A DNA stretch of 63,595 bases, filler included, from Klebsormidium nitens (GCA_000708835.1; 3 parts of 3 records of this genome joined end to end with filler, not necessarily neighbours in it); one strand, 5' to 3'. Positions 30,207 to 57,736 are shown, counted from the first letter of the whole stretch. Translations and numbers: made by a program. The notes: generated by a model not told the origin, from the sequence alone.

Positions 30207-30991
30207 GTGTTGCTTTTGAGCGTCGCCTGTGAGCGCGGCCGCACATGACATCACGATCAAGTGTTCCAATTTGAAGGACTGGTTTGCATCATTCCCACCA
30301 GAGCTTGCAAATTTCGCATTAGATGCAAGTACACTGGAGGGCTGTAGCGGATGGTTCTGAACGGACACAACGATTTTCCCGTTTTCCGGGTAGTTTGTCT
30401 CTATAGTTGACATACGACACAGATGAGCATAAGAACATGCAATCTGAAAGCCTCTCATATACAAGCTAACACTGCAATTTTTTCTGACGATACCTTTTGA
30501 AAATTGCTTGTTATCTGTGTATGTGCGCGTAGACCATACCGAGAGATTTTCCTTATGATTGATGGTCGGGGTTTGCACAAATATATCACCCCGGAATCTC
30601 TGTATTATGATAAAGTAAAGAATCTGGTCCAGACATTGCACACAGGATTTCTCGATGACTTATCGAAACAGGTCACTGCAAGTATGATAGTTGGCGACAA
30701 AGATAGACCATTGCACAGGCGCCCGACTTAGAAACCTATTAGGCAGGCACTGATTCAAACAATCGCTTCTCAGTTCAGTTCAATTTACTTAGATACAAAT
30801 CATGAAACCCGTCATGGTTGAGGCGCGCGCATACGCGGATAACAAGCAAAATTTCAAAAGGTTTATGAAAACAAATAATGTCGACTTAGCCTCTCTATGG
30901 GGAGGCTTGGATTTGTCTTGCGCTCTGCGTATCCGCGTACAGAAGCCTTCCAGCCTACTGCAAGTGTCAAGGGTAATATAACAAGGCAAAC

Positions 30992-31660
30992 CTAAACCTG
31001 ATCTCTGAACTCACAGACATTATACAAAGTGTGAACCCCCACAAGCAACGCTACCACAAGCAACCCCTTGTCTACATGATCGGGTAAGCGGATGATCTCT
31101 CTGTGCACAGTTCCTCCAATCTCGACCGCTTCGTGAATCTCTCTTATCAACGGGTCGTCCTTGAAATTCTCTTCGGCGTCCGGTGGCTGATCAGCCTTCC
31201 ATGCCATCTCTAGTCGATACGAAAAAGGGGGTTTGAAGTGACTACGGTGCGCCAGATTGCGCTTCTGGAGGTTGGCGCTGCAGCCGTACTTGTACAGCTT
31301 TGCCGACTCGTGGATGCAAGCGAGATAGAGGCAACCTTGCCCCTCAAACAGCATCTCGAGCTCCTTCTTGCGCAGTAACTGTTGGTTCGGGGCCGCTGTG
31401 GTGAGCTCCACGTACGCATCTCGAATTGCCCTGAAGAGGGCTCTGACCCGGTCGCCGGCCTCGGTACGTGCTCCCATGGCAAAACTCTCGAATGCTTTGG
31501 TGGTTAGATAGTACTTGTCAGGGGCTGGCCCACGTCGAGAAACCCCCTCACACGGAGGGGGGTTAGGGGAGCCGCCGTCGATAAACGTGTAATCCGTGTC
31601 AACAACAAAATGCATTTTGAGTGAGCGGAGAGCCGTGTCCTTCCTCCCGTGCTGCAGTCA
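30992..31660 (-). CDS. Giant-virus-like antirepressor (MSV199/AntA-like) plus GIY-YIG/T5orf172-like protein
   Basis: RKDTALRSLKMHFVVDTDY...YYLTTKAFESFAMGART.AG.RVR.LF.AI matches the phage-antirepressor-like N-terminus common in NCLDVs. LYLACI...LYKYGCSANLQKR...H matches GIY-YIG/T5orf172-like C-termini. The frame is open ~45 nt upstream of the ATG, back to an in-frame TGA or a possible TGCAG acceptor. Confidence 0.6.
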
Positions 31661-31755
31661 AGTGAATATCTCTGCGCTTCGCGACACTTCGTGGCACTTC
31701 GTAAAACTTTCTGGGCAACGATGCCTTTTTCTAGACTTCACAAGTATAACGTGCC

Positions 31756-33135
31756 TTGCCAAACTTGACGTTTGCTTGCTCGGTGCTGCCAACACCTGCC
31801 AACACGAGCCGTTGCTCAACCGCCGCGACAGCTGCAAACGTACTTAGGGGAACGTTGTGGTGCCAGAAAAGCACTTTCAATATGACAGCTCTCGTCAGCC
31901 ATGTTTTTGCACACCCCAGCGTCCAGGCGATCGACGTGAGCCAGTTGGAAGGTTGGCAGGACTCGAAGAAGAACGACGGTCCCGAGCAGTTTGTGTGCGA
32001 CTTCGCCGGTTGTAGCAAGACATTCACCGGCAAGGGATACCTCAGGCGCCATTTAAGCTCGCACTCGGAGCAGAACGCACCACCAGCAAGTTACGAGGGT
32101 TGGAGGCAGCACCACGAGTACGTGCACATCTACGGACTACCGGACGGACGAGTCTGGAGTTGCGAGGCCGGGCGCTTCTTGAAGGGTACGAAGCTTAATG
32201 GCTACATCGTGCTGAGGATCGACGGGAAGCGTATCCAACGCCACCGCCTCAACTTCGAGATCGCGTATGGGCGCGCGATTCTTCCCGGGATGGATGTCGA
32301 CCACATCGTCCCATCACCTATACCAGAGGATGGATCGGAACAGTCGCCTCAAGACGACTCCTGGTGTAATTTACAGGAGCTAAGTAGGCTAGAACACAAC
32401 CGCAAGACCTTGAAGGACAATCCCGGGGCCGGAAAGAAGAGAAGTGTCACGAGGGGCTTCCCAGTGATTGCGCGTCACGTCGCGAGCGGCAGAGAGGTGC
32501 GGTACGTTTCGGTTAGTGCTGCTGCATCAACTCTGGGGCTCGTCCGGGAACCGGTGTCGAGGCGTATCCAGCGAGGTTCGAGCGTGGAGTACGGTGGGCA
32601 CGTGTTCCGTAGGTGTCCCGAGCATGTTGCCGAGCAAGAGGACATGCCTGGCGAAGAATGGAAGGATGCGAAGTTGCATGGGAGGCTGCTGAGAGGCACT
32701 AAGGTCAGCAACCTAGGCCGCGTTCAGCTCTGTGACGGGAGGCGCACGGAGGGCAGAATTGAGCACGGGCGGCATAGGGTCGGGCTTCAAGTGGACGGGC
32801 ACCGGAAGGATGTTTTCGTCTACGTCCTCATCGCCCACACGTTCATCGGACCACCACCGAGCGACAAGCACACGGTCGACCACATCGACGGCAACTGTTG
32901 TCACAACGTGATCGGGAACCTGCACTGGGCGACCGTCGAGGAGCAGACTCGGAACACAAAGCGCAATAGGGCCGTCCGCAAGCACAATCTCCAGGGGACG
33001 CTTCTGCAGACATATGGCACAGTTGCAGAGGCAGCAGAGAAGAACGACGTGTCGTATGGGAGGGTTCACTATGCTGCAACCACAGGCAGCACGGACACCG
33101 GTTTCCGCTGGGAGTTTGTGAAGCGTGTTACATAA
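31756..33135 (+). CDS. C2H2 zinc finger plus tandem HNH homing-endonuclease-like protein (HNH-NUMOD1-NUMOD4-HNH-NUMOD1)
   Basis: Intronless; first ATG at 31882. Motifs in order: FVCDFAGCSKTFTGKGYLRRHLSSH (C2H2); HRL...DVDHI...NLQELSRLEHN (HNH 1); YVSVSAAASTLGL; EEWKD...VSNLGRV (NUMOD4); TVDHIDGNCCHNVIGNLHWAT (HNH 2); TYGTVAEAAE...GFRWEF (NUMOD1-like). Confidence 0.8.
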   Translation: MPNLTFACSVLPTPANTSRCSTAATAANVLRGTLWCQKSTFNMTALVSHVFAHPSVQAIDVSQLEGWQDSKKNDGPEQFVCDFAGCSKTFTGKGYLRRHLSSHSEQNAPPASYEGWRQHHEYVHIYGLPDGRVWSCEAGRFLKGTKLNGYIVLRIDGKRIQRHRLNFEIAYGRAILPGMDVDHIVPSPIPEDGSEQSPQDDSWCNLQELSRLEHNRKTLKDNPGAGKKRSVTRGFPVIARHVASGREVRYVSVSAAASTLGLVREPVSRRIQRGSSVEYGGHVFRRCPEHVAEQEDMPGEEWKDAKLHGRLLRGTKVSNLGRVQLCDGRRTEGRIEHGRHRVGLQVDGHRKDVFVYVLIAHTFIGPPPSDKHTVDHIDGNCCHNVIGNLHWATVEEQTRNTKRNRAVRKHNLQGTLLQTYGTVAEAAEKNDVSYGRVHYAATTGSTDTGFRWEFVKRVT

Positions 33136-33235
33136 CATCCATATTGACACAAAAACCTTCCCAACTCATGCCAACCCTCAAGCTAGCTCACATCGACTGC
33201 CTGGAGCGTCGGAGAGCGTCTCCTCGAGAGAGTTT

Positions 33236-34395
33236 TCACCACAATATCAGTTGCCTCACCAACCGGGCAAATCCGCGCGACACTTTCGACGAAACTGGTA
33301 ATAAGCTCTTGGAGATGGCGCCGTCTGCCCACTGTGCCAGTGCTGTTTCATCGCCTCCAAAGAGATCCAGGAGGTATGCCACCTCATAGGTGGTCCACTC
33401 GGAAGTGGCAACCTCATCCTTCACTTCTCTTACCATTCCCTGCTCGCTCAGATGCGCAAGAATCATGGGACCTGAGGTCTTCTGCCCCTTCTGTACATCA
33501 GACGGCTCTTCAACGCTCAGGCGTGCGGACTGATCACCAGGACCTATATCCGGTTCTTCCAACTTATAGATCCTCTCATAAAGGTCCTGCTGTTCATCCA
33601 GAAGCTTTCTGAAGTACTCTTTCGCAAGGGCTGGCATAGCACCAAACGAGGGATAGCAGAGAGTCAGGCTCCGCAGATCCCTCGCCACCTGAGTGAAATA
33701 GACTCCCCGCTGAAAGTAAAGGCACTCTTTGTCCCAATCCAGATGAATGTACTCCTTGTTGATGCGCGCTGCAGTCTCGGCAATGTCTGCTAAGGTGCGC
33801 ACAACTTCAGCACCAAAAGCTGTATCCAAGCGCTCCAGCGTCCCATCCTCGATGACGAGAGGTTTCAGATATGTCCGCATATCCTTTGACTGCCTGCACA
33901 GCGCAGTTGATTACAGAATGAACAATAACTGGTAATGAGCTAGAAGTTACAATGTCTTGTGCTTCTGTTCATCCGTAGTGGCAGTTGATTACAGAAGGAA
34001 CAACATAATCTAACTGGTATGGGAGAGGAGCACAGAACTTACAAGCAATTGTATGGAAGAAGAGCAATACAAGACAATAAGCATTCTGCTCTGGCATGGT
34101 TTGTGCACATACACAGATGACAAGCAAATTTCAAAAGGTATTGTCAGAATTGAAATGCAGAGTTAGCCCATATAGAGACAGCCTTCAAATGCCTTGTGCT
34201 TCTGTTCATCCGTAGTGGCAGTTGATTACAGAAGGAAGAACATTCTAACTACTATTCTTCCTGGCACGCTTTGCGCATATGCAGATAACAAGCAGACTAT
34301 GCTCATCTGCAGTTGAGCCAAAAGCAAAACATAAGCAAACTCTTACCTAGCTGCGCAGCACCACTCCCGTGCGTCTTCAATGCTCAACCCAGCAC
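33236..34395 (-). CDS. Uncharacterised spliced gene, last two exons (5' exons unresolved, possibly up to 35499)
   Basis: Exon 34395-34347 (AGLSIEDAREWCCAAR) splices in frame (phase 2) to exon 33893-33236. The C-terminal WTTYEVAYLLDLFG...GAISKSLL is weakly SAM-like. The coiled-coil ORF 35499-35308, with a GT donor at ~35321, may be exon 1. Confidence 0.45.
33895..34300. repeat. Intronic repeat shared with the KDZ intron (40350-40620) and with 30435-30545 (inverted)
   Basis: TGCTTCTGTTCATCCGTAGTGGCAGTT(G/A)ATTACAGAAGGAA and GCATTCTGCTCTGGCATGGTTTG.GCACATACACAGATGACA.GCAAATTTCAAAAGGTATTG occur at both 34.0-34.25 kb and 40.4-40.6 kb. A reverse-complement copy lies at ~30470-30530. Confidence 0.85.
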
Positions 34396-34589
34396 CTGCA
34401 TCCAATGCAAAATATTGCATTGCATTTCAACCCATGTGCGGACTTCACTCCATGCGATGCAATTGTGTTTAGACTGCAGTCAGAGCTACTGTGATGATGA
34501 AGAGCTGTAAAGGCCACAGCGTGAAGCGTATATCGACGTGCGTGCAAATAACTGTCGTCAGATTTACTGTGACTGCTATGACATTTAAA

Positions 34590-34835
34590 ACAGAAAGCGC
34601 GGAGCAATACCACCCCTAAAACAGAAAGCGCAATGCCAATGCAATGCCACCCAACACAGAGAGCGCTGAGCAATGCCACCCCTAAAACAGAAAGCGCAAT
34701 GCCAATGCAATGCCACCCAACACAGAAAAGCGCAACCCATGCCAATGCAATGCCACCCAACCCGACACAGAAAGCGCTAAGCCGTGCCAACCCCTAAAAC
34801 AGAAAGTGCGGAGTCATACCAACCCCTAAAAAGAA
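34590..34835. repeat. 66-bp tandem repeat (30-33-bp subunits)
   Basis: CCACCCCTAAAACAGAAAGCGCAATGCCAATGCAATGCCACCCAACACAGA recurs at ~34610 and ~34676, followed by degenerate copies. On the minus strand it reads as 22-aa hydrophobic units (CVGWHCIGIALSVLGVALLSAL). Confidence 0.8.
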
Positions 34836-35641
34836 AGCGCTGAGGAATGCCATTGTGCACTTCAGAGCCGCAATTGCTGTCAAAGTGCGCAGGTCTTACC
34901 AGCCAACTTGGAGCGCCTCTTAGGCATCCTGCCCGTCCGGAAGGCGCCCGAGTTGCGCGGCTTGGAATTGCAATAAGACACATTACCCCGCCGAGGCACC
35001 GAATGTAGACTTGCAGCCAACGTTTATCACTGACCGTTGGATCAGCGGCAATCGGACGCCGGGTAGGACAACAGTAGTCTTTAAATCCGTACGTGGCAGC
35101 TTGGGGTTGAAAGTTGGATACTTTTTGGCAAACCCTAATTTGTTGTATCACTCACACCTCACCTACTCATGTCAGGGTTACGCTCAAGCTCCCCGGCAAC
35201 ATCCTTCCAATCTGGCCGAGTGAGAGAAGGGTCTCTCTCAATCTATCAAGGCATCCACCGGAAGAAGCTTTTTTGTACGTAAAGATGATCCAGAATGCAT
35301 GTACGTGTTAATTATCCACATACCTTCCCCTTTCCAGGTCAGCAACCCGACGAAGCGCTGTTTCTGCACGCTCTCTTTCTTCCGCTATAAGTTGCATTTG
35401 CGCATGAAGAGCTTGTTCCAAAACAGCAAGTCGCTCCATTTGTGCCTGAACAACTCGTTCGAGTTCAGCAATACGCTGACGGTCGCTATTGTCTGCCATA
35501 TTCTTAGTTGCTTCTACTGATCAGGAAAATGCATTACACTGAACGCAAGAAGTATCTATCCTTGCAAGTTGGCCTCACTCTGGCAGCTCAAGAAACCCTG
35601 TAGCTCTGGGGAGAAACCCTCTTGCCTCTAGGCCTAAAACC

Positions 35642-36127: not shown

Positions 36128-36299
36128 GCTTCCTGCACTTGACGTACAAAATAATCCAGTGACAAAGCAATAACTAATCAACCCAGGGATTCTCTTCAGT
36201 CTGATGGTGACGACAGAAGTTGGCGCACCGCTTGGCTGCTTGAGATTTCGGATGCAACTGGTGCAACTGGTGTACTCGATGCATTCTTTAATTGTTCTC

Positions 36300-38761
36300 C
36301 TATATCGGGTCTACTTTTCTTCGCAAGACTTGTGCATATCTGGCGTGCTTTCCATAGGGTTTAAGCAGTCTAGTTTGTCTCTTTTGTCTCGTTTGTTTTC
36401 TCTTAGTAGCTCGGGGACGGAAAGTGTATGGAAGCGGGAGTGGAATTGGTGAAGAGGACGGGGACGGTAGTCTCACGTTTGCGTTGTTCGGAAAGAGGCC
36501 TGTAATGTCTGGGAGGTCGTCGGGCTTTTGAGATGCACCGGATCGCGTAAGTCTCTCGGGCGCTGATTGGTACGACGCAGATGTTCTATTTGATCCTGCT
36601 GATAGGTACGGCGCAGATGTGCTATTTGATCCTGCTGCTAATTGGTACGACGCAGATGTGCTATTTGATCCTGCTGCTGATTGGTACGACGCAGGCGCTT
36701 GAAATGAATCTGCTGCTGAGTGGTACGACGCAGGCGTTTGAAACGATCCTGCTGTCAGCAGCTTCTGGGGACTCTTGTAACCCAACCGCAAGGGTGACTG
36801 TTTAGGGCTTGCCTGTTTCCACCCCAATTGGATGGGGTCCTGCTGCTTCCACTCGAGAAGCTTCTGAGGACTCTTGTAAGCTAGCCGTAAGGGTGACGTT
36901 TTTTGACTTTTGGAAGAAGAGAAGTTAATCATGTTCGGGTGATTCCCGTTCCCTGTGAGCAAGTTGGGGGTTTTAGGATTNNNNNNNNNNNNNNNNNNNN
37001 NNNNNNNNNNNNNNNNNNNNNNNNNNNNNNNNNNNNNNNNNNNNNNNNNNNNNNNNNNNNNNNNNNNNNNNNNNNNNNNNNNNNNNNNNNNNNNNNNNNN
37101 NNNNNNNNNNNNNNNNNNNNNNNNNNNNNNNNNNNNNNNNNNNNNNNNNNNNNNNNNNNNNNNNNNNNNNNNNNNNNNNNNNNNNNNNNNNNNNNNNNNN
37201 NNNNNNNNNNNNNNNNTTCGCATCCCTGTGAGCAAGCTGGGGACCTTCTGATTGGAGAAGTTGATCATGTTCGGGCGATTTCCATTTCCTGTGAGCAAGT
37301 TGGAGACCTTCTGATTGGAGAAGTTGATCATGTTCGGGCGATTTCCATTCCCTGTGAGCAAGTTGCGGACCTTCCGATTCGAGAAGTTGATCATGTTCGG
37401 GCGATTTCCATTCCCTGTGAGCAAGTTGGGGACCGTTTGGTTTTTGGAAGAAGAGAAGTTAATCAGGTCCGGATGATTCCCGTTCCCTGTGAGCAAGTTG
37501 GGGACCTTCTGATTTCTGCCTCCCGGAGGAAAGCGCCGGACATTCCCGCTGCTGAATGACCGCTGCGACATGGGATTCTGCCCTTGGGTGTTGCCCGAGC
37601 GCATTGCTCTGATGGCGTCCTCGTGATATGCTCTGGGAACCGTACCGTTCTGACGGCGCTCGCTCTCCAGGTACCTGTACCTGTGAAGTTCCTCATTTGA
37701 GGGGCGATCTTCGTCAATCCAGTCTCCACCAATGAAGACTGTGTCTTCAGCAAGCACGTGCCCGTTGCCAAGCACGTTGTTGATGTTCCGAGGAGTCAGC
37801 GCAGAGGGGGCAGGGGGACGAAAGCGTCGAACATTTCCACCGTCGAACCGCTGTCGCGTAATCGGATTCCTGCCTCGCGTGTGCCCCGAGCGCATTCCCC
37901 TGATTGCGTTCTCGTGATACGCTCTGGGGACCGTACCGTTCCGTCGGCGCTCGCTTTCCAAGTACCTGTACTTGTGCAGCTCCTCGTCCGAAGGACGGTC
38001 CTCTTCGAGCCAGTCCGGACCAATGAATGTCGTGTCGGTTGCAAGCACGTGCTCGTTGCCAGTCACGTTGTTAACGTTCGGGGCGGGCGGCAGATCCATC
38101 GGATCGGCTGGGTACGTGTTGTTCTTGTTGTCCTTGTTCTTGTCCTTGGGGCTAAAGATTTTGGAGGACAACCACGTGTGGATGCTGTTGGGGGCAAAGT
38201 GCGAGCGGGGCTGAGGGTTCGGGAGTTGTGCCGAACGATGCCAGGGGAGCGGACCAATCTGGGAACTGGTCTGTGCCGACGTGAGCGGACTGGTATGTGC
38301 CGACGTGAGCGGACTGGTATGTGCCGACGTGAGCGGACTGGTCTGTGCCGACCAATGCTGGGTGAGCGGACTGGTCTGGGGACTGGTCTGTGTCGAGCGT
38401 GTCGGATGGTGCCTCTGGGGACTGGTCTGTGTCGAACGTTTCGGATGGTGCCTCTGGGGGCTAGTCTGTGTCGACCGGTGCCCCGGTCTCGCAGTCCGCA
38501 ACGGCCCGCGACTTGGCCCCCACTTTCCCAGGCACCGTTTTGTATGCTGCCAGCAAAATTTGTTTGGGTGGGGCGGCTGCACCGCAAGCCCTCACGAGTC
38601 TTGCAAGAACAGCGCCGACCCCCTCGCGGGTGCTGGGGCTTTGGTGCCACATGTTTCTTCACATGATTCGGGCAGTAAAGGCCACCGTCTATTGCCCGGC
38701 AGGACGTCTTTCGCTTACAACGCCGCATAATCGTCCCCCGACACCGTGGACAACTCGCCAT
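36300..38761 (-). CDS. Giant-virus-like multi-repeat protein with N-terminal Cys/His fingers (one apparent frameshift at ~38560; internal gap)
   Basis: ORF 38761 (MASC...CRAIDGGLYCPNH...CSCKTREGLRCSRPTQT) joins ORF 38582-36300 (KFCWQH) if one A is added to a homopolymer. The rest contains STQTSP/SAHTSPLT repeats, a duplicated ~85-aa domain (NVNNVTGNEHVLA...NPITRQRF..GNVRRF), 21-aa NQKVPNLLTGNGNRPNMINFS repeats, SYQSAAGS repeats and a basic tail. Confidence 0.6.
36900..37510 (-). repeat. 63-bp coding tandem repeat spanning the 36981-37216 gap
   Basis: AACTTGCTCACAGG(G/A)AA(T/C)GG(A/G)AATC..CCG(A/G)AC(A/C)TGAT.AACTTCTC occurs in at least 5 copies before the gap and 1 after it. Confidence 0.85.
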
Positions 38762-39498
38762 GTCTGATACTTAGGGTATGGGAAATAATCACGGTGAGCA
38801 TGGGCCCATTAGTCTGATCCCGGGGATGTTCCTCGGGGTAGGCGGTCCGTCTGAACTCATGTTGATACGGCTACGGAATGGGTATAAAGTGCTCGAAGAT
38901 GTTCGAGTGCGCCACATCCACTAGTTCTTGTGAATCTTATTACATGGTTGAGGACGTCCACAGAAGCAGCATGCCCATGCATTTCCATGTTGCAATGTGT
39001 GTGTAAGGAACTCATCATTATGTCGATCATGATCCCACATCATGCCAAAATGAATTCAAATGAATACACAGGCTCCCCAAGCAATGAATATCCTTGTCAC
39101 TGTCACAACAGTTCTCCACTATCTCGGATGGGAAGCAGTTTATTATAACGAATATTCTAATTGCCAGCATCTCGACGGTTCTTCCTACCGTACCTCGAGC
39201 CTCCTCCCCAAGTTCCACCACCCCTGCACCGGAACGCAAAGCTCTGTTACCATAAAAGATGAGGGCGTACAGAGAGGACAACACATTGCAACATATTGTA
39301 AGATGGTGCAATGTGCAAGTGATGATCGTGTTTTTCACCTGGCAAGGCTCCACGACAACAAACAGCGCCTGGTCATCACCCGAGATCAGTGCCCTGCAGA
39401 CGAGGAGTGTGAGATCCTCAGAAGCTGCACGTCTGCCGAGGCCACTGGAGCCATACATCGATACGTTCAGAAACAAGAAGACATGTAATCGTACTAGT

Positions 39499-42400
39499 CT
39501 ATGCAGCTCCTGGCCGTACCTGCATCGCTTTCTTCTTCGGCCACTTGTTCACAAGGTTTGTGTTGTGCTCCAGAATGTAGGAGTTGTAAACCAGCATCCC
39601 TGTGTTGATGGTCGCCCTCTGCTGTGTTTTGTCGAATATCATCATGAGTTTGTTGATCTGCTCGGAAACAGAGGAGTTATCCGGTCCAAGGAACTCCTCG
39701 CGGCCCTTCAGGCCATGTGTGTTGTACTTGAACTCGTCAGAGCACAGGTGATTGACCTGGTGAAAGCGGTCCGTCAGGAACGTGGTCTCGGCAAAGAACT
39801 CCGGCCAGCGCTGCAAAAGCATCAGAATGTTGTCAGAACCTGTGCCACATCCCTCCAAGCATCCAAGCATCCAAGCATCCATGTTGTCAGAGAGTTGCAA
39901 GACGTGCCCCTTGCCTCCAGGGACAACTTACCCCCTCGCAGTAGCGCGACAATTCGCACGCATTGTCGTAGATGACAAAACGTGGGGGCCGGTGCTCGAA
40001 GCGGGTGACGAGAAACGTGAATACGTCCCTCAAAGACTCGTGGCGGAGAAGCACATGAAGATAGTATACAAACGATGCTTGCATGTGACGACCATGACCC
40101 CGTCCGTCTCGTTCTTCTCGGGCTTGGGCGGTTTCTGCACCAGTGAGTTGCCATGTCAAAAACAACTCCTTGCACGCGCAATCGCATCAACACAACGTAC
40201 ACGCTGAGCAGGTGCGCTCACGCTGAGCAGGTGTGCTCGTGAGGGTGAGTACGTGTACGTACCTTTGCATCCTCTTTCGCCTTTGCCCGCTTCACCATGT
40301 TTGCCACCTTCTTCTCCGCTTCCTGCAGAGGGAACGTTTGTGTTAGACGTAGTGGCAGTTTGATTACGCAAAAACCTTGTAACTTCTGGTATGGAAGAAG
40401 AGCAAGAAGTTACAAGACAGTCAAGCATTCTGCTCTGGCATGGTTTGGGCACATACACAGATGACAGGCAAATTTCAAAAGGTATTGACAGAATTGAAAA
40501 GCAGAGTTAGCCAACCTTGAGACAGCCTTCAAATGCCTTGTGCTTCTGTTCATCCGTAGTGGCAGTTAATTACAGAAGGAACAACATAATCTAGCTGGTA
40601 TGAAGAAGAGCACAATATGACAATGCAACCGCATGGGCCTCACCGTCAGTCTCACCCCCAGTTCTTTTAGCTTGAGGATCTGTTGTTCGTGCGTCATGCA
40701 CTTGTCGCCCGTTCGCCTCCTATGCACATGCCGTCAACGTCATCTCGTCCTGCAAACTGGGGAACGTCCCGGTACACCCGGTGGTAGACATTGCTGGAAC
40801 TCAGCCTCTGCTGATTGGCCACGTAAGCCTCCCCGGCCAGCACCCCCTCTGTAGTTCCCCGGCACGGGCCATACATGAGCTCCCGAATGACGCCTACGAG
40901 CCTCTGCGCATCGGCTACGGTCACAGGCTGCACGTCCCCACTCCCGTCCAGCCAAATCTCCCCCACGGTGACGCCTAGGGCTTCGCAGAGCATCGCGGAC
41001 GCTTGGTGGCAGGCGATGTAGTCCTTGACCTCAAAAGAGAGATGAAGGAGGCACTGGAGAAGTGGGGCAAGGGCCTTCAGCGTCTGGACGGTCACCTTGT
41101 AACCCGTGCCTCGCCGTGCAAGGCCGTTGGACGGACCGGTGTCCGTCAGCTGGAACCCCGTCTTCTGCTGGTTGCCCCCTCTTGCGCTCAACAAGACGAG
41201 CCGCAAGGACGGCGCGTGGACGTGGAGGACCCGGTCCCATTCGACACTGATCTCGATGAACTCCAGGCGCCGGGCCAATTTGAGGGCCACCAAAAGCTGC
41301 ACGATGATGTCCTGAGCGCCGTATGGGAGGAGGACTCGGTCGCTGTGGATGTAGCCAAGGTGGTAGAAGAGCGGTGCATAGTCAGGGTTGGAGCAGGCGG
41401 GCTTGTCGGTTCCACCGATATGCTCGATGAGGGTCCAAACGCACGAGGGAAGGTTGCTCAGTTCCTGCACGACGGCAGATGACAAATGGGGTGAAGTGGC
41501 GCAGTGATACAAATTGTGGTCGCTCACAAAACCCCTCGATTGCGCTGGGATCACACAACCTTCATTTCATCTTTCATCCTGCGCAAGAATCACTGACCTG
41601 CAATTCGTCCGCCTTTAGAGGGGCAGGCGGCGGTGCCGATTTGGTCTGGAGTTCTTTTCCTACGTAGGTCTTCGAGACAGGGACGTGACCGCTCCACCGC
41701 TTCAACAGTCCTCTCACGGTGGCGTTCTCCACAACCTTCACAGCACCCTTGAGGGTGGTCTTCCGCTCGTCGTGATCATTATGGACGTCAGGGGTCACCA
41801 CCCGCTCGGGGAAGGGGTAGGTGATGGGTAGAAGCTTCACAGGGGTCTTCAAAACAGGATCTTTGAACCGGTGCACCATGTGAGCCTCTCTGCAATCAAT
41901 GTAGAGGGCCTCTGGATGCTCCCCGCAATCAGGGCACACCGGCCACGGCTGCTGCTCCTGGGGATCGTTTGTGGGGGACAAGGGGGGTGGCACGGGCAGG
42001 GGAGGCGTGTCCGCCCAGGGGGACCAGTCCCGTCCGCGGGGCCCCCAGTACTCGTCAAAGTCGTCACCAGTGAATTTCGCCTGCACGGGGACATCCGTCA
42101 AGCGCAACTGAAGTGCGACCGATGCGTGTTTATCGACCAGAAGACGTCGCAGCCGCACACTGGATCGCCCAGTCGCCAAATCTAGCGTACACTTAAATTG
42201 ATGGCACCAAAAATGCTGCACTTCGAGCTACACAGGACTCGAGAGATGCCTCAGAACGTCAAAAGGCTCATAGGTTTATACTCCGGGAAAAGCTGTGCAC
42301 TGTGAAGAGGCCGAATTTGCCAATACGCTGCGGCGGTCTCGCGATCTCGGCTTATCTCTCCAGCTTCCCCCGAGACGGGAAGTATCGGAAAGATACCTGA

Positions 42401-45253
42401 CGTTCCCTTTGAAAAAAGTCACACATTAAACTTCGAAAATTTCGTACCTCTGGAGGATTCAGTCGGTGCTTCAGGTCCGCCCACCTCATCTCGTCATACT
42501 TGCTTGCTTTGTCCTCCACCTTTCGTCCTGAGTTTGTCAACCTTGGGGGAGCCGAGGAGTACACCACCTGCAACCCAACCCACAATCTTCAGAGAGGGCA
42601 CAGTTGGATTCGGGATCGATAGGAATCGTCCAAGGACAGCACAAACCGTAAGCATCCAAGGGCATAGAAACGCACACACCCACCTTGTACATGGGCCACA
42701 GCTCCAAGGCTTTGGTGTGCGTTGTATAGCCATAGACACGCCCACGCCACCACTGTTGGTCCTCAGAGAACAGCCTCCACACGGTCCGATCGATCAGGGT
42801 CTTCGGATCAGCGGGCTCGGACGCGAGGACGGGCACCTCACGCAACAGCTCTCGGATGGCAGGGTTCCACAGGTTGGCGGCAGGCTGGGCAGGAATTTCA
42901 GGCCGGTCTGCGGCGGCGAGGACCCTATAGAGGTGACTCTGGTAGAAGTTCTTCAATCGCCCACGACCCAAGGGCGGGACTGCAAGAAACGTTCAAAGTC
43001 CGTTCCATCAAGTGGAGGGTTGAAGGCAGGATGGCGATGTCATCAGAAGCCTTTGGCAATCCCAAACCCTCATCAGAAGCCACTTGTCAAACCCCAAACC
43101 TCGGCAGTTCCAAACCCTCTTTGTCAAATCCCAAACCTCGGCAGCCTTCTCAGACCTTCCNNNNNNNNNNNNNNNNNNNNNNNNNNNNNNNNNNNNNNNN
43201 NNNNNNNNNNNNNNNNNNNNNNNNNNNNNNNNNNNNNNNNNNNNNNNNNNNNNNNNNNNNNNNNNNNNNNNNNNNNNNNNNNNNNNNNNNNNNNNNNNNN
43301 NNNNNNNNNNNNNNNNNNNNNNNNNNNNNNNNNNNNNNNNNNNNNNNNNNNNNNNNNNNNNNNNNNNNNNNNNNNNNNNNNNNNNNNNNNNNNNNNNNNN
43401 NNNNNNNNNNNNNNNNNNNNNNNNNNNNNNNNNNNNNNNNNNNNNNNNNNNNNNNNNNNNNNNNNNNNNNNNNNNNNNNNNNNNNNNNNNNNNNNNNNNN
43501 NNNNNNNNNNNNNNNNNNNNNNNNNNNNNNNNNNNNNNNNNNNNNNNNNNNNNNNNNNNNNNNNNNNNNNNNNNNNNNNNNNNNNNNNNNNNNNNNNNNN
43601 NNNNNNNNNNNNNNNNNNNNNNNNNNNNNNNNNNNNNNNNNNNCAGACCTTCCAAACCCCTCATCAGAAGCCACTTGTCAAACCCCAAACCTCCGCAGCT
43701 TCCAAACCCCTCATCAAAAATGTCATGAATCATAAGGCGCAACTCACCCTGTCTGTACTCGGCGTTTTTCTCTGCCAGAGTCTCGATCGCCTGGAAGGTG
43801 GCCCCTTGGTAGAGCATGCTGGTCACGTCCGTGAACACCCTGAAGTGGCTGCCGCGCATCTCTGATGGCGCCTGATAGTAGAGCTCGTTCACCTCACGTC
43901 GAAGGGTGCAGCATTGGTTCAGATCCGACGCTCTCGTGCAGTACCAGACGCAGACCTCCACGTGAACGATGTCCGTGTCATTGTAGACAGACGCCTTCAC
44001 TGTCTTCCGACGCCAGTGAAAACCGCAGGGCAATTCCTTTGACACTGGAGGATCCTGGCTGAAGAAGCCCTTGGTGGATAGGTCGAGCATCTCCTTGGCT
44101 CGGGAGGTGGCGACAAGAACCTCGTCGTCGTCGATGACCTCGGCCTTCTTTGGGGGGAGTTTGGAGCAGGAGTAGCGCTGACAGGAAGGTGTGCAGACGT
44201 GCACGGCTCTGCCAGTGTGGGTGCAGCCCTTGAACTCCTTTGCCTCGATCGTCCTTGTGTGCGCGTACAATGAGCGACACTCGGAGCAGACCATGGCAAA
44301 CACGTCCTTATCCTTGGGAGGTACCGGAGTTTTGAGGGGGACGTCAGCCCACTCGATGGCTGGCTTCCCCTTGTAACGACGTTTGGTGGTGATGTCCGGA
44401 GGCACGAAGGGCTTTCCCATGATTTGAAAGGCGTGCCAGCACTTTGGGTTGCTTGGGTCTTCCTGGCAGACATAGTCCTCGCCCCTCTTGGCGCACATGA
44501 CCCACCTCTCCTTGTTGTGTCGGATGGCCCAGAACCCTTTCAAACCTTTGTCGAGCACCAGGCAACCCGCGCTGGTGAACTGATCCTTGGGGATGATGGG
44601 GGGTTTGAGCGCCTGGACCCTCACCGTCTTCAGCACTTGCTTCAGCACTTTGAACGTGGATACACTCCCCGGTGCACTTGGGGCAACTTAGGACCCCATC
44701 GCCGCCGGTGTGCCCCGGGCGACACGTGCTGACCGGTCTGGGGAACTTTGGGGGGTGGGTGGCCTTGGGTATGATCAGTCGAAACGTCCCATCCTTCTGG
44801 GGCTTGAAGTCGGGGATGAAGGCGACGAATGCTTTGGGGTGGAGGCTAAACAGCCGGAGTGATACGATCTCTGTAGATAGATCCTCAATGTTCTTCTCGC
44901 GGGCAAGTTTTTGCTCGACGATCGCGTCAGCTTCAGTCAGCGGCGGGGCCACCAGCGGGGTCTTCTGTTTCTTGGGGGGGCTGGGGTTTCCCGGGGGTAG
45001 GGCTTCCGCCTCCCGCTTCCGAGTCTCGTGAATCACTTCCCCCTTTTTTGTATGAGGACAGTCGGGGTGGCATTTGCCCCTGTTTAAGGAACAGTGCCAG
45101 CACCCCGAGCGGGCCTGCTCCCAGGACATGTCTTCGCGGCGTCTGAAGGCACCGTCGACGCCGTCCAAACCCCCGGGGATTAGGCCTGTTCTCAGGCAGT
45201 TGGCGCACCAGACATGGAGGTAGGGGCTGGGCTGGTCGCTGTTACGTGCCCGC
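39499..45253 (-). mobile_element. Spliced KDZ-class (Kyakuja/Dileera/Zisupton) transposase gene with SWIM-like, CxC-like and Tudor-like domains; interrupted at its 5' end by a Harbinger element; three 1-nt frameshifts
   Basis: Approximate exons: 45253-43748, 42979-42684, 42567-~42398, ~42227-41597, 41464-~40645, ~40323-40262, ~40145-39931 and 39810-39499. Motifs: CPKCTGECIH and YVC...CWH (SWIM-like); CPDCGEHPEALYIDC (first catalytic D); TDGVMVVTCKHR; LLRHESLRDVF...VIYDNACEL..YC; TDRFHQVNHLC; NSSVSEQIN (catalytic E). Together these give the KDZ D-D-H-E pattern. Confidence 0.8.
43040..43715. repeat. ~48-bp tandem repeat in KDZ intron 1, flanking the 43161-43643 gap
   Basis: TCATCAGAAGCC(ACTTGTC)AAACCCCAAACCTC.GCAG.TTCCAAACCC repeats on both sides of the gap; the array is probably collapsed. 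Confidence 0.8.
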
Positions 45254-45829
45254 TTAGGCCTCCATTACATTGGACCGGTTCGGTTGGAGCAGACGTCAGC
45301 AACCAACCGACTCGGTTGGAAGGCAGCGGACCGGAACCGGGAACGTCGTTACATTGCCCATGGTTGCGTTGGGACTGGCTGACATGCACCGTCGATAAAT
45401 CAGGTGCCGCTTATCTTACGGTCTGAAGTCGGATCCGGCACTGTCAAAAGAACCTCTCTCATTGGTCCGTCAGTTCAAATTCAAAATGACCCGGGAGCTA
45501 CTGGTCTGTCTTTGCACAGTTTGGACGCCACAGCAGAAGATTGATTACTTAGAAGATCCAAAAATTGAGAGCGGAGGGACTTTCTCCGGGCTATCTTCAG
45601 TGCTGTGCTTGCTGTGGTCAGCGCGGGTTTGCCAGTGCAGCAACTCTGGGTGATCCTCGTTGACTCGATCAGTTTCAAACAGTCTGATCACTTGGTTCAA
45701 GCGCTCACAATGGGAAGCCAGAACTTGGACATGTCTCGCTTCTCCCAGATGTTCAGGCTTGAGCAGCTCTAGGAGCTCCACGCGGCTGCGATTGCTCAAC
45801 AGCGGAAGCCTGCCAGCCCGGTCCAGAAC

Positions 45830-47053
45830 TTGACTCCAGAAGAATTCATGAGGCAGCATGGCATCGGCTATGGCGTTGGAGACTTCAGTCAAGCGGTGGC
45901 GGACGAAGATGCTGAGTTTGCTGACGAGCAGGCTCCTCCATCTGTTGCTGCTAGGCATACTTTCTTAGGTACTCGTGCTTTCCGCCCTTTAACCACCAGC
46001 CCTCAGGTTTTCCCAGAGAGCGAGATAGCGTTTGGCCAGTTCTCTTCTCCTGAGGTGCAGGTCCCTGAAACTCAGCCTGATTGTGAGGTGACTGGGTTTG
46101 CTGGGAGCGAGGGGCATGTCACTGGCGTTGCATCAGATCAGCAGCATGGAGGAGTTGCTGCTCGGCAGGAGCATGAGCCTCCGTCAACTCAAGAGGGCCG
46201 CGGGGGCAGCCACAGGAAGGGGAAGGGGGCAAGTAAGGCACCGGCAGTGAGTGTCAAGCCGCCAGGTGTCACCAAGGCGACGGGCAAGAGTGGCAGGCTG
46301 TATGTGCAGCGAGCGGTCTGGGGTGAGGGTCATTGTTTGGTCTTGGCTGATGGGAAGTTGTCAACAGATGTTGCTATTGAGGAGGATGGGGGTGTCCGCG
46401 CAAAGCACACAACAGCCAATACCAGATGGGACTTGGTGGAGGATTACTGCTTCGCCAACGGGGTCCACCGTTCTGCTTCAAGCTGCAAAGACAAATGGGA
46501 GAATCTGTTGGGGGAGGTCAAGAAAGTCAGGGACTACCAGAGAAAGATTCCTTCTGGGAAGGATGGGTACTGGGCCATGGACTCGGCCGCAAAAAGAGAG
46601 GCTGCCCTTCCCCCGAACGTGTCGCAGAAAGTTTACGACCGTATCGTGGAAGCTCTTGGGGGCACTGCAAGCATGGACCCCCCCTCAGTCCTCCAGTCAG
46701 GCAGCGCGTCAGCTCCGGATAGCGAGGAGGAGGCCTATTTGGCAGGGGAGGGGCCTGACCCTGCGAAGCGCACCACGGGGTACCGCAAGAGGGCATGGGG
46801 TTCAGCTAAGAAGGAGCTAATTGGCACCTTGAAGGAGAACGGTGCTAATTTGGGCGATCAGCTCAAAGCAAGCGAGGAGGGCAAGGAGAAACGGTTCAAG
46901 GAGAGCATGGAGTTTGAGGATAGGAAGTTGAGGCAGCAAGTCGAGCTTGAGGAAAGGAGACTCAAGCATGATGAGATGCTTGGGGGGGCAATGCAGATGA
47001 TGGCACAAGCATTTGCACAAATGGTGCAGCAGAATGCGCGGCGAGAAATGTGA
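45830..47053 (+). CDS. Harbinger accessory Myb/SANT (trihelix-like) DNA-binding protein
   Basis: WGEGHCLVLADGK...RWDLVEDYCFANGVHRSASSCKDKWENLLGEVKKVRDYQ is a Myb/SANT (GT-trihelix) motif, followed by a C-terminal coiled coil. The frame is open from a possible acceptor at 45773, so a 5' exon may exist. Confidence 0.85.
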   Translation: MTPEEFMRQHGIGYGVGDFSQAVADEDAEFADEQAPPSVAARHTFLGTRAFRPLTTSPQVFPESEIAFGQFSSPEVQVPETQPDCEVTGFAGSEGHVTGVASDQQHGGVAARQEHEPPSTQEGRGGSHRKGKGASKAPAVSVKPPGVTKATGKSGRLYVQRAVWGEGHCLVLADGKLSTDVAIEEDGGVRAKHTTANTRWDLVEDYCFANGVHRSASSCKDKWENLLGEVKKVRDYQRKIPSGKDGYWAMDSAAKREAALPPNVSQKVYDRIVEALGGTASMDPPSVLQSGSASAPDSEEEAYLAGEGPDPAKRTTGYRKRAWGSAKKELIGTLKENGANLGDQLKASEEGKEKRFKESMEFEDRKLRQQVELEERRLKHDEMLGGAMQMMAQAFAQMVQQNARREM

Positions 47054-47680
47054 GGAGCTGGAAAGAGCTCCATCAAAACAACAAAACTGGTGTTTTCTAA
47101 CACCACCCTTCTATTGAGATTTTTTCACACGAACTTAGAGTAGCTTTGAGCTTGCCTTGAAGAGATTCTGAAACCTCGAGCTAATATTTGAGGGAGGTGG
47201 AATCTGCCACTTCATGCAGACTTCTCTCATAAGCTTTGCTTTTATATTGGCCTTTCGAGTTGAAGCTTGAAGGCTCTTACGATTTCTCTGATCTTGATGG
47301 TCCTTCTCTTGACGTTGAAGCTCCAATTGTCTGATGATTTGAAGCTTTGCTTTTTTGTGTCCCGTTGAAAAGGTGATTAAAGAGAATACTTCAAGACCAG
47401 AACAAGAAAGCTTGTCTTGATACTAGTTTCGAAGCTGATAAAGGTGGTATCTTTGGCTAGCTTCTAGCTTTTGATACATGACCAGAATCACCCGGCTTCT
47501 TTTCAAGCTGATCTGACGGCAACACTGATTCAGACAATTGAAAAGTCTGCAAGGCACTTGATTCACAGCAATGAAGTCTCACGTCAGCTCGAAGCGAAGA
47601 AAACAAATTCTGTTCGGAGGGTGGTGTTGTAAAACACCAGGTTTGGTAGTACAGCGGGGTCAGCAAACTTTCCCCAGTGC

Positions 47681-49132
47681 TCAACAATGCCAAAAGCAAT
47701 GCTCAGCAAGTGCATCTCGCACAGCAAGAGCATCGCGGTTGCCTCTCCCTCCAAGCGGACCAGCTGGTCTACCCCCCCCCTCAAAGTCAGGTAAGGGTAC
47801 CTCTGTCTCGTTGATGTAGTCTCCCCTGTCCAATATAATGTTGTGAAGCACAGCGCAGGCCCCTATCAATGTTGGCAGGAAGAATAAGTCTGGCTTGTAG
47901 ATCCTCCGCATTAGATATCTCCATATCCCCTTCAATCGGCCAAAGGCAATCTCCACAATTATCCTGGTGGATGAGTGGAAATAGTTGAACCGGTCGCGAA
48001 TGTCTGGAAGGTGGTCACCAGGGTAAGGAACTACCAGCCAGTATAGGCATGGATATCCTGAGTCTCCAACAATATATTGCGCCACCTCCACCCCTCCTAC
48101 CACCTCAGTCGGTCCTGCCAACCACTCGCCAGCCAGCACCTTCTGATACAGCTCAGAGTTCCTCAAGATTCTGGAATCGTTCGCGCTTCCTGGCCAACCC
48201 ACTGTAATGTCCAAGAACTTCCCGTTGGCATCCACCACAGCTTGCATAGTCATGCTATAATTGTGGTCTCTATCAAACCAGCAAGTGGCGGACGCTGAGT
48301 TTGGCAACTCAAGGACAAAGTGTGTGCAATCAACTGCCCCACAGCAGTTAGGAAGGCCCCTCTTCTCTTTGAATCCTTGAATCACTAGCTCCATCTCAGC
48401 CTCAGTCGATGGCCAAGAAAGATGCTGAGGTCGTAAGGTGGACCAGACAGCCCTACAGAACTTTCTGCTTGTGAGGCTGACAGTGCCCTCACTGACCCCA
48501 AACAGCTCACTGATTAAGAAGGTAGAATGACCAGAAGCGAGACGGTTGAGTGACATGGCAATCTGGCGTTTTACGGTCAACACTCGGTTGGGGATCTTGG
48601 AAAAGGAGAATGGTACATTGGTTTGTAGATCAGTTGTGAGCTCGTCCACGAGGTACTGGAAGGTATCTCGACTTACTCTGAAGAGCCTGTGCCATCTCTC
48701 ATCGTCCAATTCATCAGCTTCAAAGGAGTCCCACCAAGCTATGCTCCGAGGCTTGATGTAGTGAACGCCAGTGGTGTCCTTATCAAGAGGGAAGGTGTTC
48801 GGATCTGCTCCTGCGCATGCTTCTGCCCCAGCGATCAGGAAGATAATCTCTGAGTCGTCCTCCTCCCAAAAGACAGAGCTGGGAGTTGCAGAGTGCTGAA
48901 ATGCTGAGCGCACTGCAGCGTTGGACTGGATGATGGCTACTGTCGCCTGCAACAAGGAGAGAAAAATTCCCCAGAAAGCAAGGTCGCTTCCGTCCATGGT
49001 GTCCTTCTTGAAATGAAAAGCTTTGTGAACCTGGCACAAAGTATAGCTGTAGCCTGTAGCTTCCTCGAAATATTGAAAGGCCAGATTGAAACTTGCTTCC
49101 TGCGTGATTTGAATTCTGATTCTTGCAGTCAC
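47681..49132 (-). CDS. Harbinger (HARBI1-like, DDE_Tnp_4) transposase
   Basis: Uninterrupted ORF (first ATG at 48997). FRVSRDTF, HTH (LNRLASG...ISELFGVSEGTVS), GAVDCTHF, MQAVVDANGKF...GWPGSANDSRIL, IVGDSGYP, FNYFHSSTRIIVEIAFGRLKG; the D-D-E triad is present. Confidence 0.93.
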   Translation of the reverse strand: MTARIRIQITQEASFNLAFQYFEEATGYSYTLCQVHKAFHFKKDTMDGSDLAFWGIFLSLLQATVAIIQSNAAVRSAFQHSATPSSVFWEEDDSEIIFLIAGAEACAGADPNTFPLDKDTTGVHYIKPRSIAWWDSFEADELDDERWHRLFRVSRDTFQYLVDELTTDLQTNVPFSFSKIPNRVLTVKRQIAMSLNRLASGHSTFLISELFGVSEGTVSLTSRKFCRAVWSTLRPQHLSWPSTEAEMELVIQGFKEKRGLPNCCGAVDCTHFVLELPNSASATCWFDRDHNYSMTMQAVVDANGKFLDITVGWPGSANDSRILRNSELYQKVLAGEWLAGPTEVVGGVEVAQYIVGDSGYPCLYWLVVPYPGDHLPDIRDRFNYFHSSTRIIVEIAFGRLKGIWRYLMRRIYKPDLFFLPTLIGACAVLHNIILDRGDYINETEVPLPDFEGGGRPAGPLGGRGNRDALAVRDALAEHCFWHC

Positions 49133-49666
49133 TCCCGCCTAGCTTGCGGTGACAGTCTGGACAGTTGCATTGTTGCTTCGTAGGTATGCTGGCAGGTGTC
49201 GCGCCGGCCGGCCTGACCACGTGGCACTCTGGGTTTTTCATGCCAGGCCGACAGTCTGCACTCTCCACTCTATGAATGCGTCCAACCGGAAACAACTTTG
49301 ACCAAAGGACCTCTGGTAGGTCCTTTGGTCAACGCTACTTTCGGTTCCGTGATTGTCGGGAGTTTTTGAGCCCAAAGACGGTGGTCCAACGACGGTTCGG
49401 TCAGCCGACCCAACTTTTGCAATGCAAACACCGGTTCCGGTTGGACGACGTCAGCATTTCCAACCGAACCGGTCCAATGTAATGGAGGCCTTAGGTGGCC
49501 CGGCCTTGGTGGGGGTAGGTACACCGGGCGGACGTGTCAAACTTCACGAGTGCACGGTAACAGTCCTACGGTAATGCTTTCTGCTTCAAACAGCGCTGGC
49601 GTGTGGGTGCGACTCGTTTAGATCCCTGCTCCAAGCTTGAGTAAGGGAATGCGTAAGGAGACGAAC

Positions 49667-50040
49667 ATGGAAGCGAAACAGGTCCATGCCTCCTCAGTGG
49701 CAGCTGTGGATGAAAAAGAGAAGGAACTCAGCAAAGCTCCAGGAAATGCAGTACAGCAGTGGAGGCATCAGCGGCCCAAAAGGAGAAAGAGATGAGGGCC
49801 GAAATGAAGGCAGCTGTGGAGGCACAAAAGGAGAAAGAGATGAAAGCCAATGTAAAGGCGGCTGTGGAGGATTCAGTGGCCAAAGGAAAGAGGAAGATGA
49901 GGGCAGAAATGAAGGCAGCCGTGGCTCAGAGGGGAAAAGAGATGAGGGCCGACTGTGGAGACATCAGTGGCCCGAATGAGAAAGAGATGAGGGCCCACAT
50001 GAAGGCGGCTGTGGAGACGAGAGAGACTGAAATCAGGTAT
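49667..50040 (+). repeat. Degenerate 48-bp coiled-coil-coding repeat (KEKEMRAEMKAAVEAQ)
   Basis: AAGGAGAAAGAGATG recurs at ~49780 and ~49828, with further degenerate units to ~50030. The frame is broken near 49755. Confidence 0.6.
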
Positions 50041-50479
50041 GAATCGCCGGCAGTAGAATGCAATGTTTTGGGTCGCCGTGTATGCAGAGTTGTCTGACAG
50101 GATCTTTTTGTCTATTTCTGCTGACACATTCACAACATAATTCGCGACATCCAGTCCTAATTTCTAGCTGTAAGTCCATACTCCGAGGACATGGGCATAT
50201 GGTTTATAACAATGTAGATGGCTCTCATAAAAAGCATCAAGCACATTGGGCCGTATCTGACGAGGCGGGTAATGTCTGGATACACTCATACTACTTACAT
50301 TGCACCCCTGCACGATCGTTTACTTATTTCCAAAGTAATAATACACCACATCATCTCAAGATTAATACTCCCCCCGCTTTCTTGCGCTGCTATATCAGAA
50401 CTTCGCAATCTTGTTGTTCGCGCGGCGTCTATGCTATCATGTCCCCCTTGCTCAGCTATACCAAAACAGCGTTGAAGCC

Positions 50480-50900
50480 CAACATTTTAACCATTATTTT
50501 TGTACCCCGCTGGCGGAGCTGTGCTCGGCGTCCGCGACATGATCTCCTCCTCGCTCAGCAACACCAGAAATTAGCATCTAAGAAGGTGATCTCAACCCCA
50601 CTTTTTTTACCCCGCGGGCGAAGCTTTGCTCAGCGTCTAGGAGATGATCTCACCCTCGCTCAGCACTACCAGAAATCAGCATCTGAGACAATGTTTTTTA
50701 ACCATGAACTTTTTTCACCCCCGCCGGCGAAGTGTCGCTCGGCATCTACGAGATGATCTTCCCCTCAGTTGACGATTTCAAAACGCCGCATCTAAGACAA
50801 GATTTTGATCATAAACTTTCAATCCCGGCCGGCGAAATTTTGCTCGCCGTCTACCAGATTTCCCTCTTGCTCAGCAATACCAGAAACATCATTCAAGAAA
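50480..50900. repeat. Four diverged ~105-109-bp tandem units
   Basis: CCCCGC.GGCG(A/G)AG...GCTC.GC.TC...GA.ATGATCT...CTCGCTCAGCA..ACCAGAAAT.AGCATCT units start at ~50505, 50610, 50719 and 50824. Confidence 0.8.
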
Positions 50901-57643: not shown

Positions 57644-57736
57644 GACCTCTCCCGTCTATATTCCATCCACATTTTCGCGCCGCCTCGCTCGCCGAGCTGC
57701 CTCCGAACGCACGTTCGGGAGACGCCCGAAAAAATG

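Follow-up and report, generated by a model that had tools for sequence, protein, structure and literature searches.

Does the region from 30,207 to 50,900 of a 63,595-nucleotide stretch of Klebsormidium nitens DNA (the window, in whose coordinates all positions are given) form one large transposon of the Kyakuja-Dileera-Zisupton (KDZ) superfamily, loaded with giant-virus-like genes? The original prediction proposed such a composite element, with a KDZ transposase gene starting at about 49.5 kb and captured viral open reading frames (ORFs) downstream. The piece analysed here makes up the last 27,530 bp of scaffold DF237601.1 (GCA_000708835.1), as its final 12,486 bases are the reverse complement of the locus of the K. 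nitens protein KFL_006520100; base 57736 is the true scaffold end, and the GC content ranges from 0.45 to 0.65. All searches were run ORF by ORF, and the family scans (Pfam) of the piece took ORFs of at least 68 amino acids. On balance, the island appears to be layered mobile DNA near a scaffold end and not a single element. The first layer would be a decayed, spliced, nuclear-type gene of a rare and divergent KDZ-like transposase lineage (39.5-45.26 kb, minus strand), the second a complete and young PIF/Harbinger transposon that entered this gene at a TTA close to its 5' end, and the third a dispersed repeat of about 226 bp, with one copy within the gene.

A complete Harbinger transposon at 45257-49490

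The transposase placed at about 49.5 kb does not belong to the KDZ superfamily. Its ORF, 47681-49138, matches Pfam DDE_Tnp_4 (1.2e-35, 122.9 bits against a cutoff of 24.8, profile positions 1-158 of 158), which rules out the KDZ identity and assigns the protein to PIF/Harbinger. The same ORF also matches Plant_tran (3.8e-10) and keeps the invariant acidic residues D270, D303 and D359. It lies in an element with ends and a TTA duplication of its own:

45257-49490: complete autonomous-type PIF/Harbinger transposon of 4,234 bp with ends, TTA duplication and two genes, nested in the KDZ-like gene
45257-45288, plus strand: left terminal inverted repeat, 32 bp, perfect, with weaker similarity on to about 45309
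49459-49490, minus strand: right terminal inverted repeat, pairing with 45257-45288
45254-45256: left copy of the TTA target-site duplication
49491-49493: right copy of the TTA target-site duplication
47681-49138, minus strand: Harbinger DDE transposase ORF, open, 485 codons from stop to stop, 438 from the first Met
45773-47053, plus strand: Harbinger Myb/SANT-like partner ORF, open, 426 codons, 401 from the first Met

The inverted ends agree at 32 of 32 nucleotides, and the search with up to three mismatches gave 2 matches against 0.00 expected in 100 shuffles. The partner ORF matches Pfam Myb_DNA-bind_4 (8.9e-8, 32.9 bits versus a cutoff of 27), and the two ORFs are convergent, tail to tail, with 3' ends at 47684 and 47050. 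The earlier failure to find element ends therefore no longer holds for the Harbinger, whose ends are located, whereas it does hold for any larger element, for which none were found. Since the Harbinger has its own ends and target duplication, the ends of the element that carries the transposase at 49 kb lie close to that transposase. As the only strongly supported transposase domain belongs to this self-contained unit, it gives no argument for a KDZ transposon mobilising viral genes.

The element is nested in the KDZ-like gene, and does not stand beside it, because its two flanks are adjacent in a paralog of that gene, locus L002, which represents a paralogous 'empty' site. The left flank (45258 leftward) matches L002 from 7196 on, and the 21 nt past the right end (49491-49511) match L002 7180-7200, a match that is weak alone (E 0.4) and positionally exact; about 20 nt of homology to the KDZ-like gene resume there, at 49494-49511, past the nested Harbinger.

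The unit at 45257-49490 is an ordinary, complete PIF/Harbinger, essentially without departures from the known family. It shares with the plant PIF/Pong type a DDE_Tnp_4 transposase with a tail-to-tail Myb/SANT gene, short inverted ends, a 3-bp TNA/TWA target duplication (TTA here) and a size of about 4 kb; the two-gene, tail-to-tail layout is also part of the family description in PMC12477816. It differs in belonging to a Klebsormidium lineage. The nearest relative found is a sister Harbinger in the JGI contig L007 (3606-7325), with related ends, TTA/TTA, an identical gene layout and flanks unrelated to the window; the sister element is 72% identical, its transposase 73% in protein and its Myb/SANT partner gene 50%. 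More generally, the transposase is closest to JGI and K. nitens proteins (53-73% identity), including KFL_012280015, and after these to land-plant ALP1/HARBI1-type proteins (35-45%). PIF/Harbinger transposons are the source of the domesticated ALP1 and HARBI1 genes. A scan of IMG/VR for the Harbinger end sequence gave no copy. By analogy with the family, binding of the ends would fall to the Myb/SANT protein, which would bring in the DDE transposase; the latter would cut and paste the 4.2-kb unit, with duplication of the TTA.

Three further observations concern this element or its kind. The public K. nitens gene model at 45848-50097 (plus strand, 565 aa, weak Myb match) fuses the Myb/SANT ORF with an ORF outside the element; this model is an annotation chimera, and the Harbinger transposase itself is unannotated. 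Between the Harbinger and the 105-bp tandem array described below, a 48-nt coding-like repeat with a Lys/Glu-rich motif occurs in 3-4 copies (49754-50014, plus strand) and has no family match. Lastly, on a second K. nitens scaffold (DF237105.1, locus L012), a TTA followed by 42-nt inverted ends (86% complementary) bounds a unit of about 820 bp (8102-8924), which directly abuts a truncated copy of the KDZ-like gene and looks like a Harbinger-type miniature inverted-repeat transposable element.

The KDZ-like gene at 39.5-45.26 kb

An intron-containing transposase gene resembling the KDZ superfamily had been expected in the block, and such a gene is indeed probable, at another place than the one proposed. 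Judged by its relatives, the minus-strand block at 39.5-45.26 kb is probably a single transposase gene, spliced and KDZ-superfamily-like, with some 1,300-1,500 codons and these parts:

39502-45256, minus strand: KDZ-like transposase gene remnant, seven collinear ORFs, including the assembly gap 43161-43643
44347-45264, 43644-44687, 42540-42992, 41577-42227, 40697-41566, 39890-40186 and 39502-39927, minus strand: the seven ORFs
39515-40131, minus strand: segment homologous to the Pfam KDZ part of the relatives (profile about 60-197), with a conserved intron between its halves

Six other loci show these ORFs in collinear order: L002/L003 and L010/L011 (40-70% protein identity to the window), L004 (26-44%), L013 (25-43%), L009, which is 96-97% identical in DNA over 42971-39329, and the copy in L012 on scaffold DF237105.1. 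The KDZ signal reaches the window via these relatives alone, and maps to 39.5-40.2 kb. Pfam KDZ is matched at 1.3e-5 by the L010/L011 homolog of window 39926-40112 (25.5 bits against a cutoff of 26.6, profile 65-134) and at 6.7e-6 by KFL_001560050 (P0203), an annotated protein of K. nitens (26.4 bits, same cutoff, positions 60-197); the relative P0007 matches at 0.016. KDZ is the sole Pfam family found among 14 segments taken from all copies, six of which match it.

Several lines of evidence join the ORFs into one gene. In P0007, a single frame spans both the KDZ segment and a 290-aa domain (window 40697-41566), and the gene model of KFL_001560050 unites three segments of the block. The spacer between the two KDZ-homologous halves shows GT(A/G)AGT...AG at one shared position in five copies (the window, L002, L009, L010 and L013); it is 133-427 nt long and is an annotated intron in KFL_001560050. 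Given the P0007 frame, the KFL_001560050 model and this shared GT-AG intron, we rejected the reading of the five to seven ORFs as separate conserved viral genes. The lineage is rare, since a profile of the 290-aa domain found 17 relatives, all of at most 397 aa, among 1.84 billion representatives; the same search returned no long annotated KDZ protein.

The gene has much in common with those of known KDZ transposons, namely a very long, Cys-rich, intron-containing transposase gene with relatives that match Pfam KDZ 60-197, a nested foreign transposon, a decayed transposase, tandem arrays close to the gene, and at least six other dispersed loci whose flanks are unrelated, one of them on a second K. 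nitens scaffold. It differs from them in that the KDZ scores are below the cutoff in the relatives and lacking for the window's own ORFs, neither CxC nor TET/JBP matches occur, no inverted ends or target duplication were found, and the neighbours are not conserved between copies.

Some of these differences, together with the structural results, weigh against the superfamily assignment and thus against the layered account as we state it. No window ORF matches Pfam KDZ (PF18758) even at E<=5, and the scores of the relatives (26.4, 25.5, 25.3 and 15.4 bits) all fall below the cutoff of 26.6. Cys clusters are seen in the translations, and Pfam gave no CxC-type domain match in the upstream ORFs or in their full-length relatives. 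The AF2 model of the 290-aa domain is poor (pLDDT 58), and Foldseek searches of BFVD and PDB with this model yielded nothing at E<=0.001. PDB sequence searches with the family profile A2 and the 544-aa protein of L002 likewise returned nothing meaningful.

The window copy is decayed and presumably inactive. It contains one nested Harbinger, one copy of the 226-bp repeat and one assembly gap, as well as two frame changes relative to uninterrupted relatives (the KDZ segment of L011 and a 358-aa ORF of L002). The first two ORFs are fused in L002 and laid out as two ORFs in L010 and L004 as well, so that this 5' split was not counted as a break. In another copy, L004 10886-12871, the KDZ-homologous part is truncated and is overlapped, in a different frame, by the start of an ABC1 atypical-kinase gene (5.5e-49).

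The repeats in and around the gene are the following:

40389-40614: copy of the dispersed repeat of about 226 bp, in the KDZ-like gene, at a place where the coding sequence of P0007 is uninterrupted
33951-34258: about 1.4 tandem copies of the dispersed repeat
30419-30545: inverted partial copy of the dispersed repeat, with a further core copy at 30824-30876
50484-50800: 105-bp tandem array, about 3 copies (2.5-3) at 61-79% identity, about 1 kb upstream of the 5' end of the KDZ-like gene
L010 6149-6493, L011 1-188 and L004 5157-5572: tandem arrays upstream of the KDZ-like gene elsewhere

A repeat shared by an intron of the KDZ gene and two other loci was thus correctly noticed, the first copy lying in an intron-like spacer of the KDZ-like gene. 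It is also present in L009 and L010, and as L009 is 96-97% identical to the window, the repeat may be intronic in this lineage. Rfam and tRNA scans, made to see whether it is a short interspersed nuclear element, gave no match. The tandem array was real too, although it had been described as four copies over 50.5-50.9 kb; it precedes the KDZ-like gene and is 1 kb away from the Harbinger end, on the outer side. Arrays of 90 and 117 bp, with 3-4 copies each, precede the gene in two other independent copies, L010/L011 and L004. Their unit sequences are unrelated to one another and to that of the window; no such array occurs in L002, and L010 carries additional arrays over about 3.5 kb upstream of the gene.

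Two runs of N interrupt the sequence:

36981-37216: assembly gap, within a 63-bp tandem array
43161-43643: assembly gap, in the KDZ-like gene

They raise the question of whether unrelated repeats were joined by scaffolding, in which case the neighbourhood described here would be unreal. Two gaps in 15 kb, each within tandem repeats, and the fact that several related contigs break close to the KDZ-like gene could be taken that way, but each gap has one repeat family on both flanks. Around the first, 36887-36980 and 37223-37316 are 62% identical and the same repeated peptide motif occurs on the minus strand on either side; with one array family on both flanks, order and orientation, though not copy number or reading frame, can be taken as plausible there. 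A 760-codon ORF running through this gap is an artefact and no gene model, so its two sides were searched separately. The second gap is bordered by a 61-nt direct repeat (87% identity) and lies beyond the homology end of its upstream ORF; the ORFs on its two sides keep the order and strand seen in related loci (L002/L003, L010/L011, L004), which supports contiguity but gives no frame. Gene order over it agrees with four other loci, L009 independently confirms 42971-39329, and the Harbinger and its junctions are in gap-free sequence. A scaffolding artefact is therefore very improbable.

A possible single large element and the ORFs beside it

Downstream of the KDZ-like gene, the block holds these ORFs:

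38063-38770, minus strand: ORF with a Cys-rich N-terminus, resembling a gene that follows the KDZ-like copy in L010/L011
36300-38591, minus strand: repeat-rich ORF broken by the gap 36981-37216, with a duplicated domain of about 88 codons at 37525-38079
31750-33135, plus strand: HNH/NUMOD homing-endonuclease-type ORF with a C2H2 finger, 461 codons
30992-31657, minus strand: family-less ORF, with an N-terminal half resembling a gene just downstream of the L012 KDZ-like copy

The ORFs assigned by the original prediction to nucleocytoplasmic large DNA viruses (35.6-38.8 and 31.0-33.1 kb) are present and mostly on the minus strand; 31750-33135 alone has a family match in the 30-39 kb block. This ORF matches Pfam HNH_3 (2.1e-10), NUMOD4 and I-HmuI NUMOD-like domains under the cutoff, and PHROG HNH families (7e-28). 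It seems to hold two HNH/NUMOD-like modules (PHROG residues 146-222 and 296-446) after an N-terminal C2H2 finger. For 30992-31657 there was no Pfam, PHROG or PDB match, leaving the idea of a T5orf172- or Bro-N-like protein without support in these databases; Pfam likewise gave no support for reading the Cys-rich N-termini as EsV-1-7-like. The duplicated 88-codon domain resembles the C-terminus of an L004 gene, and the remaining ORFs of the block have no family, PHROG or PDB match. Scans of metagenome contigs with ORF 33239-33910 and with profile A2 found nothing. Among 139 small ORFs pooled from 30207-57736, one PHD-1st_NSD (PHD finger) match was obtained (4.3e-6), which a follow-up scan of the most Cys-rich candidates did not trace to its ORF.

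Could all of this be one giant transposon of the KDZ superfamily, with one end at 51 kb or higher and the other at 30 kb or lower? Such an element would have a pseudogenised transposase and accessory genes, partly virus-derived, would have acquired the nested Harbinger and the small repeats, and its copies would move in trans via an intact transposase made elsewhere. Fungal KDZ transposons have TET/JBP as travelling accessory genes; Pfam scans found no TET/JBP match among the ORFs of the piece. Most of the downstream ORFs are on the strand of the KDZ-like gene, which is preceded by tandem arrays in the window, L010/L011 and L004, although the array units are unrelated in sequence from copy to copy. 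Comparable algal elements are documented: PMC12477816 reports a 31.7-kb giant KDZ element in Chlamydomonas.

The flanks of the other copies speak otherwise. When those of five independent copies (L002/L003, L010/L011, L004, L012 and L013) were compared all-against-all with the window, two short domain-level matches alone were found, both downstream, at 38.5-38.75 kb with L010 and at 31.3-31.5 kb with L012, corresponding to the relatives of 38063-38770 and 30992-31657 that lie just downstream of these copies; there was none upstream. Likewise, L002 6967-11983 and L010 6629-12111 are equivalent and form the sole block common to these two loci, after which SET follows in L002 and a dCMP deaminase gene in L010. 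The 96-97% identical copy L009 (3397-4356) loses all similarity at window positions of about 39216-39330, though the contig runs on for 0.9 kb; the point of loss is some 0.2-0.3 kb past the last ORF of the KDZ-like gene and directly follows a GTGAG-type donor-like site. Terminal inverted repeats or target duplications were found at no scale: around the KDZ-like gene, four loci gave chance-level matches only, and between 49.5-52 kb and 30.2-39.6 kb there were none beyond chance, in a block cut by the left edge of the piece.

We therefore consider a single giant element unlikely. That a giant cargo-carrying KDZ element is involved is possible and unsupported, and the 30-39 kb ORFs are not shown to be its cargo. 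The composite proposed to mobilise viral genes is not supported, as no ends of it lie in the piece and the neighbours of five copies are largely not shared; the original prediction had named as its refutation that other KDZ copies would lack these ORFs, and this is largely what was found. One point is in its favour: the relatives recur beside giant-virus-type genes (see below), though they share almost none of the 30-39 kb ORFs.

The layered account also has points against it here. The compared copies are 44-72% identical, so that different families could carry different cargo, and most contigs stop at most 2 kb downstream of the KDZ-like gene, which limits the flank test. For the break in L009, an element end, a nested insertion and a rearrangement are all conceivable. 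Arrays do recur upstream of the gene in three copies, and in Ectocarpus, giant KDZ elements of 10-30 kb carry fixed nested transposons, extra genes and pseudogenised transposases (PMC12477816).

Between the block and the scaffold end, neighbouring sequence outside the elements includes:

55361-57655, minus strand: hybrid histidine kinase KFL_006520100 with HisKA, HATPase_c and Response_reg, 764 codons, 100% match

KFL_006520100 is intronless and multi-copy. A paralog 91.6% identical in DNA (L014 9910-11437) lies at the end of another K. nitens scaffold, next to host-type B3 and RING genes, and both K. nitens scaffolds with a kinase of this type break in or at that gene. We rejected L014 as a second copy of a large element, because only the kinase is common to it and the window. 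On the JGI contig L006 (8372-12274), a 65% relative of the kinase is found by a second kinase and ETR1_N, ankyrin, T5orf172 and KilA-N genes. Closer to the block, an annotated intron-containing gene spans a tandem duplication of about 335 bp at 53292-53856, made up of two segment pairs that are 71% and 82% identical.

Giant-virus neighbours of the KDZ-like lineage

As the original prediction had stated for capsid, PolB and packaging ATPase, these hallmark genes are missing from the piece at the Pfam level, and neither D5 nor VLTF3 was found in the same scans. The 30-39 kb ORFs, which encode an HNH/NUMOD endonuclease, repeat proteins and Cys-rich proteins, are best described as virus-like or orphan-type neighbours. 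The case for their viral nature is made by the one HNH/NUMOD endonuclease and by association, and hallmark genes have no part in it.

The association is seen in the relatives. In L004, the KDZ-like gene cluster lies within 5-9 kb of a P8 minor capsid gene (3.5e-29), DUF5767, SWIB and SET, and the neighbours of other copies include D5_N in L013, the dCMP deaminase gene in L010/L011 and SET in L002/L003. K. flaccidum/nitens is reported to hold Phycodnaviridae-like PolB, MCP, ATPase and VLTF3 genes with viral neighbours (PMC5294986), and its viral genes are reported to be methylated (PMC12344493). In Chlamydomonas incerta, a KDZ transposase was described in the repeat flank of an endogenous giant virus, and introns are present in endogenous giant viruses of green algae (PMC9693826). 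The viral neighbours of the relatives and these published Klebsormidium and Chlamydomonas cases make an association between transposon and virus plausible and not new in kind.

Such surroundings allow the 30-45 kb block to be read as a fragment of endogenous giant-virus (Nucleocytoviricota) DNA, in which the KDZ-like gene would be a resident of viral or endogenised genomes, while the Harbinger and the small repeat would be host transposons inserted later into silenced viral DNA. The endonuclease and the orphan repeat ORFs resemble endogenous giant-virus DNA of green algae, which the host species is known to carry, and the viral neighbours of the relatives, as well as the intron and the KDZ transposase, have their counterparts there. 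The piece differs in lacking any hallmark gene, and IMG/VR scans with the HNH ORF, 30992-31657, 40697-41566 and the family profile A2 gave one weak match alone, an ORF on contig L001 that is 27% identical to the HNH ORF. Moreover, a conserved spliceosomal intron and host-type annotation characterise the KDZ-like gene, and its contexts vary between copies, as expected of a mobile gene. We consider this origin less probable than not.

A further reading combines virus and transposon. The rare KDZ-like lineage, so far known from little besides Klebsormidium and a pair of related metagenome samples, might live preferentially in giant-virus DNA, endogenised or not, shuttling between virus and host or aiding endogenisation, and the 30-51 kb block would then be a decaying hybrid of virus and transposon. 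We give this speculation little chance.

Returning to the layered island, its main value is corrective, in that a self-contained Harbinger accounts for the transposase from which a cargo-carrying KDZ element had been deduced. The remaining interest lies in the KDZ-like family itself, which is very rare in public data and keeps a conserved intron, and whose members repeatedly stand next to giant-virus genes, in several contigs. If this association between gene and virus proved true genome-wide, it would bear on the interplay of transposons and endogenous giant viruses in streptophyte algae, an interplay so far described mainly in chlorophytes and brown algae.

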